Part shown: in pieces, positions 27,337 through 54,400 of the stretch
How positions within the stretch are numbered: the stretch's first letter is position 1
How the letters are laid out: each line of letters begins with the position of its first letter
Source: Trichosphaerium sp. ATCC 40318
Taxonomy: Eukaryota > Protista > Tubulinea
Length of the DNA: 64,000 nucleotides
NCBI GenBank assembly: GCA_038496445.1
Contig: JALMLS010000377.1
Location: 62,001 to 126,000 of the forward strand
Reading direction: 5' to 3'
Notes under the pieces: model-generated
What the model was told of the DNA's origin: nothing
Seen by the model: the letters and a program-made list of their open reading frames with translations, nothing else
Database searches by the model: none
Translations under genes and position numbers: made by a program

Positions 27337-27734
27337 CTGTACACCACGTCACAATTTCTGAATACGTAATAATAAGTTTCAACTGCATTCCTTAAGCCTA
27401 TTTTATGCTTCATTCGCGTTTTGCCTTATAAGAGCACGTTTCAGGCTTGAAACGTGTATCAAACAGTACATTTGCCAAAGTTTAGAGCTTTGCACAATGA
27501 GTGTAGTGGTAGTTGGGCGTTTGCTCTTATGTAAAAGACAACGTGTCATAAATTTGGCACGTGTCAATAATTAACAAGCCATTCAGTACATCTACACTAC
27601 CCTGCACCATCCGCAATGCTGCTTCTGCAATTTACACAGTAGTTACTCTTGCTGACAGAGCAATTTATAGTGATTACACTCCATTATTGTACAGTAGAAA
27701 AATGGCGTTGCGGATTGCGCGTGTTGGAGCTGTA

Positions 27735-30290: not shown

Positions 30291-33200
30291 ATGCGCAACC
30301 GGAGAAATCATACCTCAGGCGTCAATCACGATTTAAACAACCATAACAGCCAAAGTATCGATAAGGGTCCTCAAAGTGACGTAGTAGGATGTGTGAAGCT
30401 TTTACAGTACTATTCATCGGCGTACAACAAATGGATGTTGGTTGAATTTCACAAGCAGTCGAGGTTCTGGATATCTAAGGAACGCTCAAATATCGCCAAG
30501 GCTAGCGCGTCAGTGAACGCACCTCCTCGATTGGTGGCTCAACTGCTCTCCAATCCAATTTATAACCCTGAATGGGTACGTCTACGCTCAGTAACACTCT
30601 GCAGCGCTTCGTATAATCATGCTACCGAACACAGCGTTTAGACATTTCCATGTATCAATACTGACACTTTATGCGAAGGACATAGGACTACAAGCGTTGG
30701 AAATCATCTCTACGGATAAAAAGAATAACGTGACAAAGCTTTATGCTACTTACAACTCCAACGTCTGTATGACATGGTATGCTTTCTCTAAAAAGTCATA
30801 AACGCTCACAAACCTCTTATAGGCCTAGAGACTATTGTATTCAACAGTTTACTCATAAATCACCAAACGGCACGTGGTACATCGCTATGAGATCGTATGA
30901 GGACCACTTTCAACCGCCTATCACTGGTGTAATAAGGTATAAATCTTTGTAAACGATAATCTCATTTTACTTTTCAACAGCGCCCAATAGAACCGTTTTA
31001 AATCTCAACCGTTTTTTTTTGAATAAAATAAAACTAACGAGTACACTTCAGGAGTAAAATATTACCTGGTAGCGGTTTTTGTATCCAACCTGCGTTGTCA
31101 GAAGCCGGTAAGTGTAATGTTACGTTGGTGGGCAACTATGACTTTACAGGAGGTACACGATATTTTCCAATGTATCACAACTGAAAAAGGAGCACAAGGT
31201 TGGCCAGAGGTTGTATTTCAACCGTGGTTGCGAATGATGTTAATGTCCAAGATGAAGAGAATTCTATCGATTAGAAACTTTGCAAGCAATTACCTCACAT
31301 TCAAAGGAACAAGTGCATCAGCAATAAAAACCCCACCAGTAAAAAGGAGAACAATAGCACTTGGTGATAACAACAAGGCACGACTTTAAAATAGTCTGTT
31401 TAGAAAACTCTTCTAATACTGAATAGTTGCGTTCTCAAAGTCCAGGAAGAACCAGACCTAAGAGTGTTCATAAAATAGTGATGAAAGACAATAACACCAA
31501 CAGCTTACCTGTTGCTCAAAGTTCTGGGGCGAATGAAAAAGCAGAAGAAGATGTAAACTTTTCCTCACTACTTTATTTCTAAGCTTGTTTATTAATAACC
31601 TCTCTCGCCTTAGGATTTTGTTGTTGTAAACAATTCGGTGGAACCTTTTAGAGAAAGGATAAATGAGGCTTTAAAAAAAATCAAAAAACTATCTCAAGTG
31701 TCTTCTGGTGAGGATGGATGGCGAGAATCACAGAGTGGTGGAGTACGTACTTTTTTTTTTGTTTGTTTTTTTTCATATTTCTACAGGTAACGATTTTAAA
31801 ACGAGAAGAAAAAGACGGCCTAGCAAGCGCCCTAGGCACGTGTTATGCTACCTCTACCAATTTTAACATTTTTTTCTTGTAGGAAAAGGAAGAATACCAG
31901 CACCAGCGTCATTCTTGAGAACGTATATCAGAGACATTGAAATTCGTAGCGAATGGGATACCATGTTCAAAGAAGGTAGCTTGTTTTTGGGAAAATCATT
32001 GTTGAATATTTTTTATTGACACGTGATTAGGCAGAATTGTAAAGCAACTAGATGATAGTACCTTTATTGCACATGAGACGTATAACTCTGTGTGGCCGAC
32101 TTCTCCGAGAGACATACTGTACTGTACGCTGTTGTCTTTGTCCCCTGTTTTTTTAGCTTATTGTTTGTAGTGGGCACTTACGAGTTGGATAAATCCGGGA
32201 CATACTACATGTGTGCTTTCTCTGTTGGTATTAACAATAGTGTACCTCGTGTTTTTTTTGTTTATTTGTCTGTTAGAGGATGGGGAAGTCCCTGAACAAA
32301 AAGATAGCGTGAGAGTTAATTTATTGGTACAATGAAGATTTTTCAAACATTTAAACTTATTATCGCAAAAAGGTTGGTGGATGGGTTCTTAAGCCTTGTA
32401 AAGAAGACCCTAATGTTACTGATTGTACATATATAACTTGTATAAATTTGGGTACGCCAACGTATTACCCGAAGAACCGTCTTGAGGTTACCAATTGGCT
32501 ATTTTGATAACCTTTAAGGTGGAACTTTACCTGCTTTTGTGAAGAGTCAAGTGATACATAATCAACCAATGGTTATCGCAACGTTACGTAAGGTTGTTGA
32601 AAAAAAGTATAAAGATACATTTGAAGCAGAGACAGTAGATACAGTAGTGTACTAAACCATTTTTGTTAACTTGAGAATATTAACTTGTTTTCAAAAGGTT
32701 TCCTCCTACACTCCTTCACTCTGGTGCTCCTGCGCAATCATCACATATTACAAATACCTTGGATGATTTTACAAGCTCGGTATTGTCAGAAGATGAAGAA
32801 TTTCCATCGTCGTATTCTCCATTTACACCAGATGAAAGGTATCAACACGTTTTATCACACCTTTCGTATTTTCTTGCTTATCACCTTTCTTAGATCCAGT
32901 AAGCGACCAAGGAGTGTTAGTGCATTGTATTCAAGCGAGAATGAGTCAGAATCCATGAGCACAAGGAGGAGTAGCCTTGGTGCCTCTTCAATTCAGTTCC
33001 CACCTCTTCACTTTGCTTATGCACCTGACAATCAGTATTTTGACATCATAAGGGTACGAGATCGGTTCATTCCATTATACTAACATGTTTGAAGGAATCT
33101 ATGGATCAGCTCTTAGACGCTGCAAAGACCAATAAAAAGTCTAGTGGTTGGAGAAATTTTGAGCTTAAAAATGATGTTTTGATTACAAGGCGTAAAACTA

Positions 33201-33926
33201 AAGGAACGCCATTTTTTTGTCAAAAGGCACGTGTTTGTACAACTCTTATTATTTGTTTGGAAGAAAATGTTATGACTTTATTTATAGGGTATTGGTGAGA
33301 TAGGTGCTGATGTAGAGACTATTAAAAATGCTATTATAAGTTTTGAAAATCAGTCATCTTGGGATCCATTGTTAAAACAATGTATATACTTTTTTGTCTT
33401 TTAAAGTTTTTCTTCGCCTTACCATCACTTGTTTACTTACTTTTATAATAGCGTCTATTATCGAGAGTATAAGTGATCAATGCAAAGTTATTCATGCCAT
33501 ATACGAAACAAAAGTTTGTGTCATAAAGGTATGCAACTACATCTAAAAATTTTGATTGTCCTTTGTTAATTATAACTAATTTTTCTAAATCAGCAATCTC
33601 GTGATTTTTGTTACGTTACCTACTGGAGACGGGATAAAAAAGGAAATGTCTTTATTGTTGGTAGATCAATACAACATGACAAGTGTCCTATCGACCCAAG
33701 CAGAATACGTGGTGAAGTAATAGGTTCTGGGTGGATTATTGAGCCAAAGAACCAGGCAGATGGTGCCATTGGTGAAAGTAAAGTGACTTATGTTACACAA
33801 GTCGACCCCAAGGAAGTACCAGTCCCAATTGTAAATTTAATAGCCGAAAGACAACCACTCAATATTGCATCATTACGTAGGAAGATCACAGGATCTAGAA
33901 ATGTTGTTAAAGCTGGTGTCTTGTAA
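30291..33926 (+). CDS. Protein with three START lipid-transfer domains
   Basis: Three copies of W...K/GKG.I...WD...(S/P)RD(Y/F)C...RG....GW.I.P...TY...D separated by Ser-rich linkers; includes GC-AG introns. Confidence 0.88.
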
Positions 33927-34556: not shown

Positions 34557-35621
34557 ATGAACGCAGAGCTTGCTAACTACGAGTTAAAGATTACTACTAG
34601 TTTCGTCGACTATAAGGCACGTATCTATGATATAGCACTATTTAAACGGCCTGCGATTGGATCGTGCGTACGTAACCTTGGACGCCAACTGTCTGGTAAC
34701 TCAGGCTTGCTGGAAACCGATGTGTTGTCATGCGTTTTCACACTTAGCGCGCTCAACGATCCAATCAATGGCTACATGCAACCCCTACTGGCGTGTACGT
34801 AACCTTGGACGCCAACTGTCTGGTAACTCAGGCTTGCTGGAAACCGATGTGTTGTCATGCGTTTTCACACTTAGCACGATTCAGCAGTAGGATGCGCAGC
34901 CATTTGTTTTTACAAATTGTTTTCTAGTGTGAAGTTTAAATCGAGCCAAAACAGGGCACTACGCAAGGAGTGCTTTAGGCCTGAGCAGAACTTGCGTGGC
35001 GCCCTGTTTCGGCACATTTTACGCGTGCATACCTTTTAATGGTACTTTTAGGCTTTGGTAGCTACAGAACTACGTCGTCTAGAAGCTTTAAAAGACACCG
35101 AGATAGAGAAGGCTCGGCAAGAAAGAGAAGCGAGGGAAGAACAGGCTCGGCAAGAAAGAGAAGCAGCCCAAGAAAAGGATCGTCGTAGCAGAGAACGACA
35201 AGCAAAAGACGCCGCCAAAATAAAAGCCCTAACGAATGAGAACAAAAAATTAGAGCAACGACACCGTGACCTAAAGCGCAAATGCGAAGAAAGTGCATGG
35301 GAAGCGAAATACCTGCGCAAAAAGTGTAGAGAGTGGCAAGGTCGCGCGCGAGAAATGAAGCGTCAAAGGATTGCCATCGAGACAAATGCATTTACTGCAT
35401 TGCGCTGCAACCTACACGGTTCGCTTGAAGAACAAGCACGTAATGAACGCCGAGCGGATTGGGGCGATGATGAACAAAAGAAGAAGCTTGTTATACCACC
35501 GCTTCCAAATGGTGAAGAATTCGTAGACGACGATTCTGAAGATTCTGGTGAAGGCTACCAAGACATGAATGATGGCGATTACCACCAACCTGGTGGAGAT
35601 GCCTTTTCAGTACGTAAATAA
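34557..35621 (+). CDS. Lineage-specific coiled-coil protein; predicted exons 34557-34616 and 35052-35621
   Basis: Joining AAG|gcacgt...ttttag|GCT gives MNAELANYELKITTSFVDYK-ALVATELRRLEALKDTEIEKARQER, which supplies the ATG that the 188-aa ORF lacks. Confidence 0.6.
34640..35013. ncRNA. Candidate intron-hosted structured RNA (three stem-loops plus a closing helix)
   Basis: Inverted repeats 34655-65/34756-66, 34767-73/34898-904, 34784-90/34885-91, 34640-47/34934-41 and 34945-67/34991-35013. Confidence 0.5.
34668..34874. repeat. Two identical 80-nt direct repeats (34668-34747 and 34795-34874) separated by 47 nt
   Basis: Both read GTACGTAACCTTGGACGCCAACTGTCTGGTAACTCAGGCTTGCTGGAAACCGATGTGTTGTCATGCGTTTTCACACTTAG. 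Confidence 0.97.
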
Positions 35622-36366
35622 TTCTACGATTTTGAACCTTGCTGTTTTTTTTTGACACTAACCGTCCTATTGTAGGAATAATCTCGATGCATTGTTTGTT
35701 TTGATCTGTATTATGTTGTACAATAATAATAGTAAATGTAATTTTATACGTGTTTCTTGGTTTACTGATCTGATGTAACTTTGCTAAAAACAACTCTTTT
35801 TGCGTGCCACGCTACCACTTTGGAGAGACATTGGTGCCCTTTCGGTCAATTAGTGGTTGGCGACGTGTAGAATTCAACTTTTCTGATCATAGCACGGTTG
35901 ACAATAGCACATTTGAAACTTAAGTTTACTTTTCTTACATTACAACTAGAAATCTGACAAAATACACTTCTTCTTTTGTACATCTCGAACTCGTTGCTGT
36001 CTGTTCGTTATGTATAAACCTGCGTGGAGTCTTTTGAGGAACAGTATTTGTCAGGTAAATCGAAGTGTTTCATTAAAAGGGCTTGAGTAAAGTTCTATTA
36101 CTAGCTCTGCTCTGCCCATAGTTGCGATTGACCTTCTGTATCTTTGTATATGTAACTTCTTCACCTGTTCTGGAATTTCTAACGTTCTGATACCATTTCT
36201 ACGCTCACAATCAGAAAAAAAGTTGAAACTGCTAATTTTTTTCCATTCAAATCTAAAACAGTGCGGAATTCAATTGGTATTAGCGCTTATGATGTAGAGC
36301 AGTACCAATGATTACACTCATAGTATGAGAAAAACGAAGACGCTGTTGTGATCGTTGTAGCAGATT

Positions 36367-51422: not shown

Positions 51423-54400
51423 CTATGGGATTTGAAACCTTGGTTCATTCTTTGGGCTTGATGCACACTCGGCAAGTGACCCAAATATAGGCTCTAACTT
51501 TTGGGCAATATCATTCCACAGTCCTAAAAATCATAAGTGTCTGTTGTTGATTGAAGGGAAAAAAAAACAAACAAACATACCTTGACCAAATGCGACGTTT
51601 ATTGGATCAATAATGTTCAGGAAGCAAACATTATCAGTACCTGCTATACCAAGTGCACGTGCCAAATCACGATAAAAGTAATAACCTGAATGCACAGTCC
51701 ATAAATAAGTATATTTATACGCGGTAGGATTAGCTCCCCAAGATCCAATATCTGAATAAAAATTAGAGAAAAAAAACCGCTATTCTTCACGTGCATTCAA
51801 GTGGTACACGATAAGATGACTCCCGTCTACGAATCACGGTCATAGCATCTTGCAAACATTGTATAGCCAATTCCTTTGAAGATTTTCCCTTGATTCTTCC
51901 CAGCTCTATGTACTCTTTGAAATACGTCAACACAAAATATCTTTTCTACAAAAGTTGTTTACTTACGATAAAAAGCCTCCACTTGGCGGACACGGATTGT
52001 TGTAATTTCAGCAGCATCCACTATTTCGTTGTATAGGCCAACAAAACGTGCTAGGTACAATGTTAGAGAATATCGTACCACTCAATCGTACGTGTAATTG
52101 TGCACTGAGAAGAAAGAGTCTGAAGTCTTGATGAAATATTTCCAAATCTTGTTGTCATTGCATGAAGTAAAGGTTTTACCTTTGTTTTATAAAATTCATC
52201 TTCGAAAGGATTCTCACTATCAAGAAGAGAAAATCGATCTATTTGAACCACATTAAGAACAAAACACTCCCGTGATCAATGCGAGTACCTGGTTGAGTGT
52301 GCATAATATTGAGATACATTGTTATCTCGCTCTAAAGCAAGTGTTATAGTGGATGCTGAAAAAATCAAGTTTTTTACATACCACCGCATCCCATCCTTGA
52401 ATGAATGCTTGTCCATTCCTCATGTAAATATCATCTGGCAGAACATCGTTTATCTTTCCTAGAACCAATAAATCATGCTGAGCCTCAATAAGATCCGAAA
52501 CAAGTTGAGCCAAGGAAGGACAGTTAAAGTCTTTAAAAATTGTAGCCAGGATCTCTGACGTCGCTTGACTGTCTGTTAGTGCTTCGCTTCGTGGGTTCCA
52601 CGAACTTTCTGCGAGCATAACTACCATGCATTAGACTAAACATTTCATTATTTACACTCACCATCAGACAACCAATAAGCCCACTCCCAACCAGAGTTAA
52701 AGTTGATTTGTCCATGAATTTTCTTGTTCTCTTTAACCTCTCGCTGCGCAATTGTACGCATGTCTGATATTCTAGCAGCACCATAAAGAGGTAGAAATAG
52801 CGGTACATCAATATCATAGCTACAAAAAAAAAATAAGAACTCAAAGTTATAAACATATTCACTGTCTTTCGTACTTTACCCAATAGGCAGTCTCACCATG
52901 ATAAATCACTTCTCTATCACCAATCTCATAAAACAAGAAATCCAACATGTAATTAAAGTTGTTGTTCCCTATCATATCTTAGTCAGAGTTTCGAAACTTT
53001 ATTTCTATTAAAGCACGTACCATAAGTCCCAGGTACAATATCGTTGAAAGTATAGTATTGCACAGTATGGGGGTATATCCCAAGAGATGAATTGGCAAAG
53101 TGAGGCAAGAAGTTAAAGTTGATAGGCTTGTTGGTTCGTGGATCCTGTTTGGAAAAAATATGTAAGCTCTTGTTGTTGAAGATAAGATACCTTGTAATTG
53201 TTGCATGTTTGATCACTTGAGCAATGACACTTGATGTAAGTTGGCTTTTTATACTTTGATAGTGTGTAATCGGCCAGGGCATTCATCCAAGCCTTTTGGA
53301 AATAAGCCAACCGAAAGATAAACGAAAATCAACTTACTAGCATTGTACCACAGTTGGGTTTAGTGAACTCTGAGAATCCGCTTTCTACAATGATATTAAT
53401 ATTGCCGCGGTTAAATCAAAGCATGACAACAGCATACCAGTAGCAATAAAGTCAAAATTCGCTTTCATAAAAAAGTCTGTTGTGTTTCGTATACTAGCCA
53501 ATTGTTCAGAAAGAGTCCCTTTGCCATCTGTCATATGCATTGCATGTTGCTGTTCAATGGCAATAGCGACATCCGCGCCACAAGCAATACCTCGGCTATG
53601 ACAAGTGTCCGTAAGTATTTTAAACCGACGCTGGCGCTCGACACTAAACAATTTGTTAACAAGGTCAAAAGCACAACAACAATGGCAGAAAAGAATTCAA
53701 CAAACCTGAAAGCGAAATCGGACCATTCTTCTGCGGCAAGTATTACCCACTCTAGCCTATTTTGTCTATTGGCTATCATCCACTCTACTCAGAACATCAT
53801 TAGTGAGAACGGCGAGAACGGGGAACGCAACACCTACCCAAAAATAATTCGAACTTTGGCATCAATTTCATCCAGCTGGCGTTGTCAGTAGAGAGACCGC
53901 TGCCAAATCCGTTCAAGAGGGACATGAGCTCTAATGGATGCTCTGTATGGTAATGCACACCTCTTACACCCCACCGTGGAGATTCCTACAACGAATTTAG
54001 TAAGTGTTCTCAGTTTCTCCTGAAAACCGTTCGCTACCTTTATTAACACATCACCAAAAGCTAGATTCAACGATGGAGGGCGGATAGGTTCAAGAGGATG
54101 CAAGAAACTAAAGCCAAGGATTTTTAACATGTGATAAGCAGCGTAATGAGCGCCAGAATTGCCGTTTAGAGGCACCTAAAACGCATAAGTTATAAGTAAG
54201 AAATGAGGTGGGAAAAACGTTCACAGTTTTCAAAACTTGTTTTTTGTGGCGTTAGCTCTTGTTTTTGTAGGCCAACTAATGGATTAATTGTTTTTTTCTT
54301 ATTTTGTGATAAGAACTTTCTGAGTGTCGTACATTTCCTGTCGCGCGACTCCCACGGGCGCAAAGTACAGTAGCGTTCGCTACAGCTGATGTAGACGAAG

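Follow-up and report, generated by a model that had tools for sequence, protein, structure and literature searches.

Two Tandem Modules with Identical Intron-Shaped Cores in a Predicted GC-AG Intron of Trichosphaerium sp. ATCC 40318: a Candidate Structured Intron RNA

A predicted 435-nt intron of Trichosphaerium sp. ATCC 40318 contains two tandem modules of ~127 nt each on the + strand, and both modules hold the same 80-nt intron-shaped core between the arms of stems that differ in sequence. Based on the sequence of the window (the whole stretch of 64,000 nt of contig JALMLS010000377.1 that was analyzed, numbered from its first letter), we conclude that this feature is real and non-random and that it is an uncatalogued candidate for a two-module structured intron RNA. 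We tentatively favor the reading that this RNA is released by splicing of the host intron and that its intron-shaped cores probably bind parts of the spliceosome. A preliminary description of this DNA had proposed a tandem structured RNA module with intron-shaped units, and this proposal is supported by the non-random intron ends of the cores and by a clamp that closes both of them in the same register.

RESULTS

Layout of the locus

The features discussed below are as follows (positions in the window).

34557..34616, + strand: exon 1 of an orphan coiled-coil gene (predicted); ATG at 34557, 20 codons, ends AAG; codon score +0.11/codon (weak)
34617..35051, + strand: host intron, GC-AG, 435 nt (predicted); donor GCACGT, branch-like TTAAT 13 nt from the end, acceptor TTTTAG
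34655..34667, + strand: clamp 1, 5' arm; pairing probability 0.98
34668..34747, + strand: core U1; GTACGT...YAG, branch-like TTCAC 8 nt before the end, 49% GC
34748..34766, + strand: clamp 1, 3' arm; strand of the 5-bp helix, bulge, strand of the 11-bp helix
34767..34794, + strand: clamp 2, 5' arm; strands of 7-bp, 4-bp, 7-bp and 5-bp helices
34795..34874, + strand: core U2; same sequence as U1
34875..34904, + strand: clamp 2, 3' arm; 34874-84 and 34887-91 are possible alternative partners for the 5' arm of clamp 1
34905..34927, + strand: T-rich linker with a strong cryptic acceptor at its end; joined to the GC donor, this acceptor gives a stop at codon 23
34935..35021, + strand: long 87-nt hairpin, the size of a pre-miRNA, at the host intron's 3' end; z -6.1, pair probabilities ~1.0
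35052..35609, + strand: exon 2 (predicted), coiled-coil followed by an acidic tail; 186 codons, codon score +0.25/codon
35610..35675, + strand: GTACGT-AG intron of ordinary type, 66 nt; the last exon after it has 2 codons and includes the stop (35676-35681)

The two cores are identical and have intron ends

The preliminary description had reported an 80-nt sequence that occurs twice at 100% identity. Cores U1 and U2 are indeed identical over 80 nt each, and the exact repeat block is even 81 nt long (34668-34748, one base beyond the AG), or 84 nt at 99% identity, with a period of 127 nt. There is no second exact direct repeat of at least 25 nt in the 64-kb window. A 12-mer search of the window found no further copy of the core, and a covariance model built from both modules found no third module in it. 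Dispersed copies, which are a trait of introners and MITEs, are likewise absent elsewhere within these 64 kb, a statement that applies to the window only.

The identity had also been said to start at the commonest 5' splice site of this genome and the unit to have intron ends, and both statements hold. GTACGT is the commonest of the donor-like hexamers counted, with 74 occurrences (the others have 53 and 39). An 81-nt block that starts with one of the top three donors and ends in YAG can be placed at 8 of 63,919 positions, by a test that was chosen post hoc. The core contains U2-type spliceosomal signals, namely, the GTACGT donor, the TTCAC branch motif 8 nt from the end, and the YAG. Its length is within the local range, and its acceptor scores at the 51st percentile of candidate introns (by a weak model). 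Its GC content is 49%, compared with 36 +/- 7% in the candidate introns of the window. The core alone does not fold significantly (z -0.4), and its two alternative folds, a two-hairpin form and a rod form, are at most ~3 kcal/mol apart.

Within each core, a CAG closely preceded by a branch-like motif would define a 37-nt intron (34668-34704 and 34795-34831); this internal CAG outscores the core's own end. Each core also opens with the palindrome TACGTA (34669-34674 and 34796-34801), which could pair two modules or two molecules.

Searches of metagenome, viral contig, and protein collections found no homologous loci. A gapped core pattern had 10 matches in metagenomes, each of which is unrelated beyond the pattern itself, and three core patterns had 0 matches in viral contigs.

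Unrelated stems clamp both cores in the same register

The perfect 11-bp stem that had been described around copy 1 has a pairing probability of 0.98, and an 11-bp Watson-Crick stem was obtained in 0 of 3000 flank shuffles. Copy 2 is closed by a stem of its own, as had been proposed, with helix probabilities of 0.5 to 0.95. When the flanks were shuffled around fixed cores, 2 of 300 shuffles folded as well as the real sequence. In a gapless alignment at the 127-nt period, the flanks of the two copies are identical at 9 of 41 positions (22%), which is the level of unrelated sequence. The earlier statement that the flanks are not duplicated is therefore correct for their sequence, but it does not extend to their geometry: both copies share a clamp, in the same register, in which a 1x6 loop separates a 7-bp helix from a 5-bp helix. 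Seven of the 12 clamp pairs are changed on both sides between the copies and one is changed on one side. (A 2-bp outer helix of the consensus fold, where copy 1 uses another register, was left out of this count.) No shifted register retains more than 4 shared pairs, and 7 were reached in 2 of 20,000 shuffles.

The helix next to the unit had been said to covary, and it does so in the same register in both copies, though single-sequence folding gives this 5-bp helix a probability of only 0.16 in copy 1 and 0.02 in copy 2 and favors different pairs close to the core. In copy 2, the predicted minimum lacks the shared 5-bp helix, and forcing the shared clamp costs +0.8 kcal/mol in copy 1 and +1.6 kcal/mol in copy 2. 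The YTCAR bulge that had been noted on the 3' side of both copies is present in both as a motif, but its positions differ by one base.

The same-register clamp on unrelated flanks argues for a constraint at the level of structure, followed by later homogenization of the cores, on covariation evidence that consists of two sequences. Two points count against structural constraint or qualify it. By our own estimate, two stems, once given, would share a register by chance in ~1 of 30 cases, and complementary arms can arise from a single template-switching event, which is a caveat on the covariation. The identical block is exactly the sequence enclosed by the first covarying pair, and its edges are therefore as compatible with a core defined by structure as with an intron. 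The finding of 0 differences in 81 nt beside flanks at the random level rules out a single neutral duplication. From this contrast, we infer that the cores were homogenized or recopied after the flanks diverged or that very strong selection acts on them.

The alternative helix is non-random but costly

The preliminary description had pointed out that the 5' flank of copy 1 (34657-67) can pair instead with the 3' flank of copy 2 (34874-84), and it had suggested a splicing switch. This competing helix is real and non-random, since only 3 of 3000 shuffles match it, and it extends by 5 bp (34650-54 with 34887-91). In the full RNA, however, it has a probability of ~0.001 or less and costs +8.8 kcal/mol. 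Folding energies are thus against the switch, and with a cost of about 9 kcal/mol we reject an equilibrium switch. Stem 1 is also completed first during transcription, which speaks against a switch as well. According to these folding models, the alternative helix is more plausibly a relic of the duplication, or the hairpin that would form if 34668-34874 were skipped, than a switch.

The modules lie within a predicted GC-AG host intron

Removal of 34617-35051 joins 20 codons in frame to the 186-codon coiled-coil exon. This host intron has a GC donor in a strong context and an AG acceptor at the 96th percentile of all YAG, and its predicted splicing restores the frame, as expected for a GC-AG intron. 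If only U1, only U2, or only both cores are removed, stops arise at codons 96, 96, and 57, respectively. Since removal of the host intron keeps the frame and removal of the cores alone does not, the frame favors the reading that the intron is spliced as a whole. The U1 donor joined to 35051 is in frame and adds 17 residues. If the 47-nt spacer is kept as an exon, a stop arises at codon 38. By a rough codon model, the stretches of the intron have non-coding scores. The strand had been left unresolved in the preliminary description; based on the host gene, it is most likely the + strand.

The published genome GC content of 37.69% (PMC10521059) agrees with that of the window. Candidate introns in the window have a GC content of about 34 to 36% and a median length of ~65 nt, a size that the host intron exceeds several times over. 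Its helices collapse the 435 nt to ~98 unpaired nt. The host intron folds with a z of -3.3, and without the cores it folds with a z of -6.2. The terminal hairpin (34935-35021) has a miRNA as its best Rfam match, at E=0.5. The GC donor (34617-34622) pairs with 35023-35028 with a probability of 0.88 in the excised intron and 0.02 in the presence of the exons, and this pairing would close the ends of the free intron. Candidate GC-AG introns that start with GCACGTG are found at 31836 and 33227 (+ strand) and at 51794 (- strand); the host intron starts with GCACGTA.

Protein searches with exon 2 as the query detected no homologue of its protein, and 10 nearby ORFs are absent from the protein collection searched. 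The upstream neighbor (33576-33926) encodes a START domain (Pfam E 1e-13). At 27590-27730 there is a long irregular hairpin, which ranked first among the 120-nt windows of a coarse folding scan (z -2.6) and has no Rfam match.

Comparison with known RNA classes

No snRNA, snoRNA, riboswitch, or ribozyme had been recognized in the units by eye, and our searches agree with this. Rfam gave nothing at gathering score in the 64-kb window, a tRNA search found none, and motifs of ribozymes and snoRNAs are absent from the units. For a box C/D snoRNA, there is no C box near the 5' end with a D box near the 3' end and no Rfam match. For a box H/ACA snoRNA, there is no H box in the + strand core or in the hinge between the modules, and the rod fold places its 10x9 loop ~27 nt from the base of the stem, whereas in this class ACA is found 14 to 16 nt below the pocket. 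The hammerhead core CUGANGA is absent even if one mismatch is allowed, and a descriptor of the nested double pseudoknot with a catalytic C of HDV-like ribozymes had 0 matches on both strands. For a hairpin ribozyme, the loop B strand has A at position 42, where U42 is required; the single GGAA element is ~30 nt from the closing stem, with flanking helices that do not pair, and the required RGAA opposite N-GUC and A22-A24 and C25 beside helix 4 are missing or misplaced.

The units were also compared with known intron classes. No consensus splice signal spans any of the three junctions that a stwintron could use, and excision recreates none. An intron derived from an introner or MITE is contradicted by a terminal match of 4/15 and by the absence of a target-site duplication. 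The half of a bulge-helix-bulge motif, as in tRNA-type introns, is present in the folds of copy 1 and absent from those of copy 2. The whole unit does not form the strong hairpin of a mirtron or agotron (z -0.4). An independent Pol III gene was rejected because a TATA-like box precedes U1 only and a start there would omit the 5' arm of stem 1. The TATA-like box is TATTTAAA at 34639-34646, 29 nt 5' of core 1, and T-runs are found at 34735 and 34907; core 2 has no counterpart of the box.

DISCUSSION

A two-module RNA with intron-shaped cores

The reading that we tentatively favor, a two-module structured RNA released with the host intron, would require the following history and behavior. An old tandem duplication may have been followed by divergence of the arms with their pairing kept, and distinct arms would let each module fold separately and locally. 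The cores may have been made identical afterwards by gene conversion or recopying, in a tract that ends at the first covarying pair. The host intron would be spliced whole, from the GC donor to 35051, aided by helices that leave ~100 unpaired nt, and once excised it would persist as a folded two-module RNA. In the most speculative step, the cores, whose donor is the commonest one, whose branch-like motif is 8 nt from the AG, and whose two ends are held in a 5-bp helix, might act as spliceosome-binding decoys that are mostly uncut. The good folding of the intron without its cores, its non-coding parts, and the rarity of such intron-like ends count for this reading, while the lack of a stable fold in the core and the lack of homologous loci count against it. 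A genome of short introns would also be expected to splice an 80-nt GTACGT-AG unit with a median acceptor, which speaks against decoys. It is conceivable, if unlikely, that the locus is a natural array of identical intron-mimic cores on stems of distinct sequence and the same shape, which would either titrate spliceosomes or, through nested splicing, yield twice the dose of an 80-nt RNA; we found no description of such a layout in the literature searched.

Several known systems resemble parts of this locus. In yeast, the spliceosome re-binds excised introns with a short branch-to-AG distance (10.64898/2026.01.21.700889). By analogy, the proposed persistence while holding spliceosome parts, the strong donor, and the short branch-to-AG distance are like those of the stable excised linear introns of Saccharomyces (10.1101/426049; 10.64898/2026.01.21.700889). 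The distances here (8 nt in the core and 13 nt in the host intron) are within the yeast type but are usual among local candidate introns, and so they do not discriminate for a yeast-type stable intron. In contrast to the Saccharomyces introns, whose signals are at the ends of a linear intron, the signals here are internal, duplicated, and clamped by stems. Agotrons (PMC4869172) and mirtrons are likewise whole-intron units, and the 80-nt length and above-average GC content of the core are like theirs, but the unit here is nested in another intron and is not strongly folded. Fungal stwintrons and sister stwintrons (PMC8469720) also have intron-shaped units within an intron and sequence-similar intron copies; unlike them, the units here recreate no splice signal on excision and have no terminal inverted repeats. 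An enlarged intron with tandem RNA modules is reminiscent of intron-encoded snoRNA and miRNA clusters, though the cores have neither C/D nor H/ACA boxes. The 87-nt terminal hairpin fits the size of amoebozoan pre-miRNAs, which are mostly 75 to 125 nt (PMC11014262). The core shares with the hairpin ribozyme (PMC8216279) a loop-B-like 9-mer directly after a variable closing stem and a GUC, whereas U42, the loop A strand, and the loop B partner are missing.

Alternative explanations

The preliminary description had suggested nested, twintron-like introns. The units are nested within a predicted 435-nt GC-AG intron, but the stwintron geometry is absent. The cores could nevertheless be true nested spliceosomal introns, with clamps that join their splice sites and with two identical agotron-like RNAs of 80 nt, a doubled dose, cut out. 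Nested excision could leave a compact 275-nt intron with three hairpins, and the identity of the cores could result from local intron transposition or conversion. This explanation is consistent with an identity that begins exactly at GTACGT and stops one base past the AG, with a core length in the local range and an acceptor at the candidate-intron median, and with a remainder that folds far better than the whole (z of -6.2 and -3.3, respectively). Agotrons are whole introns of 80 to 100 nt that are GC rich (PMC4869172); however, they are strongly folded, which the core is not, and the core's GC content departs from that of candidate introns in the window. Moreover, the first two bases of the donor and the last base of the acceptor lie within the shared helix, and the covarying pair that adjoins the core would be unable to form once the core is excised. 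We consider true nested introns possible but rather unlikely. We give less weight still, as a quite improbable alternative, to the explanation that there is no RNA product and that a stretch with cryptic splice sites was duplicated, with stems that were selected only to hide these sites and shorten an over-long intron or that arose by template switching, and with cores homogenized by conversion. Masking would make sense of the several mis-splicing routes that lead to early stops, such as inclusion of the 47-nt spacer as an exon, and of helices that collapse most of the 435 nt; the perfect 11-bp arm fits template switching, and the core itself is not significantly folded. The same register and loop sizes in two stems of unrelated sequence are left unexplained by masking, for which deletion of the cores would be a simpler remedy.

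The remaining explanations have little to recommend them. Ribozymes typically combine an invariant core with a variable closing stem. The core here begins with 9 nt that differ from loop B of the hairpin ribozyme at one position, and GUC and GGAAAC elements also occur. These similarities would fit a self-cleaving core with tandem copies from which a monomer or circle of 127 nt is released, as happens with retrozymes, but the mismatch falls on U42, an essential position that is nearly invariant across 941 natural hairpin ribozymes (PMC8216279). There is also no RGAA strand at the position of loop A, no loop-B partner beside the closing stem, no Rfam match at E up to 10, and no HDV-like or hammerhead core, and the 127-nt circle folds weakly (-23.6 kcal/mol), all of which makes a ribozyme very improbable on the sequence as it stands. 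That the region is partly coding by alternative splicing, with coding as the reason for its conservation, is equally hard to credit. The frame is kept in 21 of 157 enumerated splice combinations, including removal of 34668-34874 plus 35025-35051 and use of the donor at 34668 with 35051, but the added stretches have negative codon scores, the second intron of the former combination would be 27 nt with a poor donor, and the helices would be left unexplained. An assembly or amplification artefact would account for an exact repeat; since the 47-nt spacer copies no neighboring sequence and pairs specifically with both flanks, we regard an artefact as extremely improbable.

Implications

If the stems and cores serve only for masking, the locus shows a short-intron genome tolerating an intron several times the usual size. 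Identical cores on unrelated stems of equal geometry provide a direct test of intron-bounded sequence copying or homogenization within one gene, which bears on intron gain. If the cores bind the spliceosome or are cut by it, the locus would represent the stable-intron control known from yeast in a dedicated form that is both duplicated and structured, and the authors of the yeast stable-intron work predicted such control in other eukaryotes.
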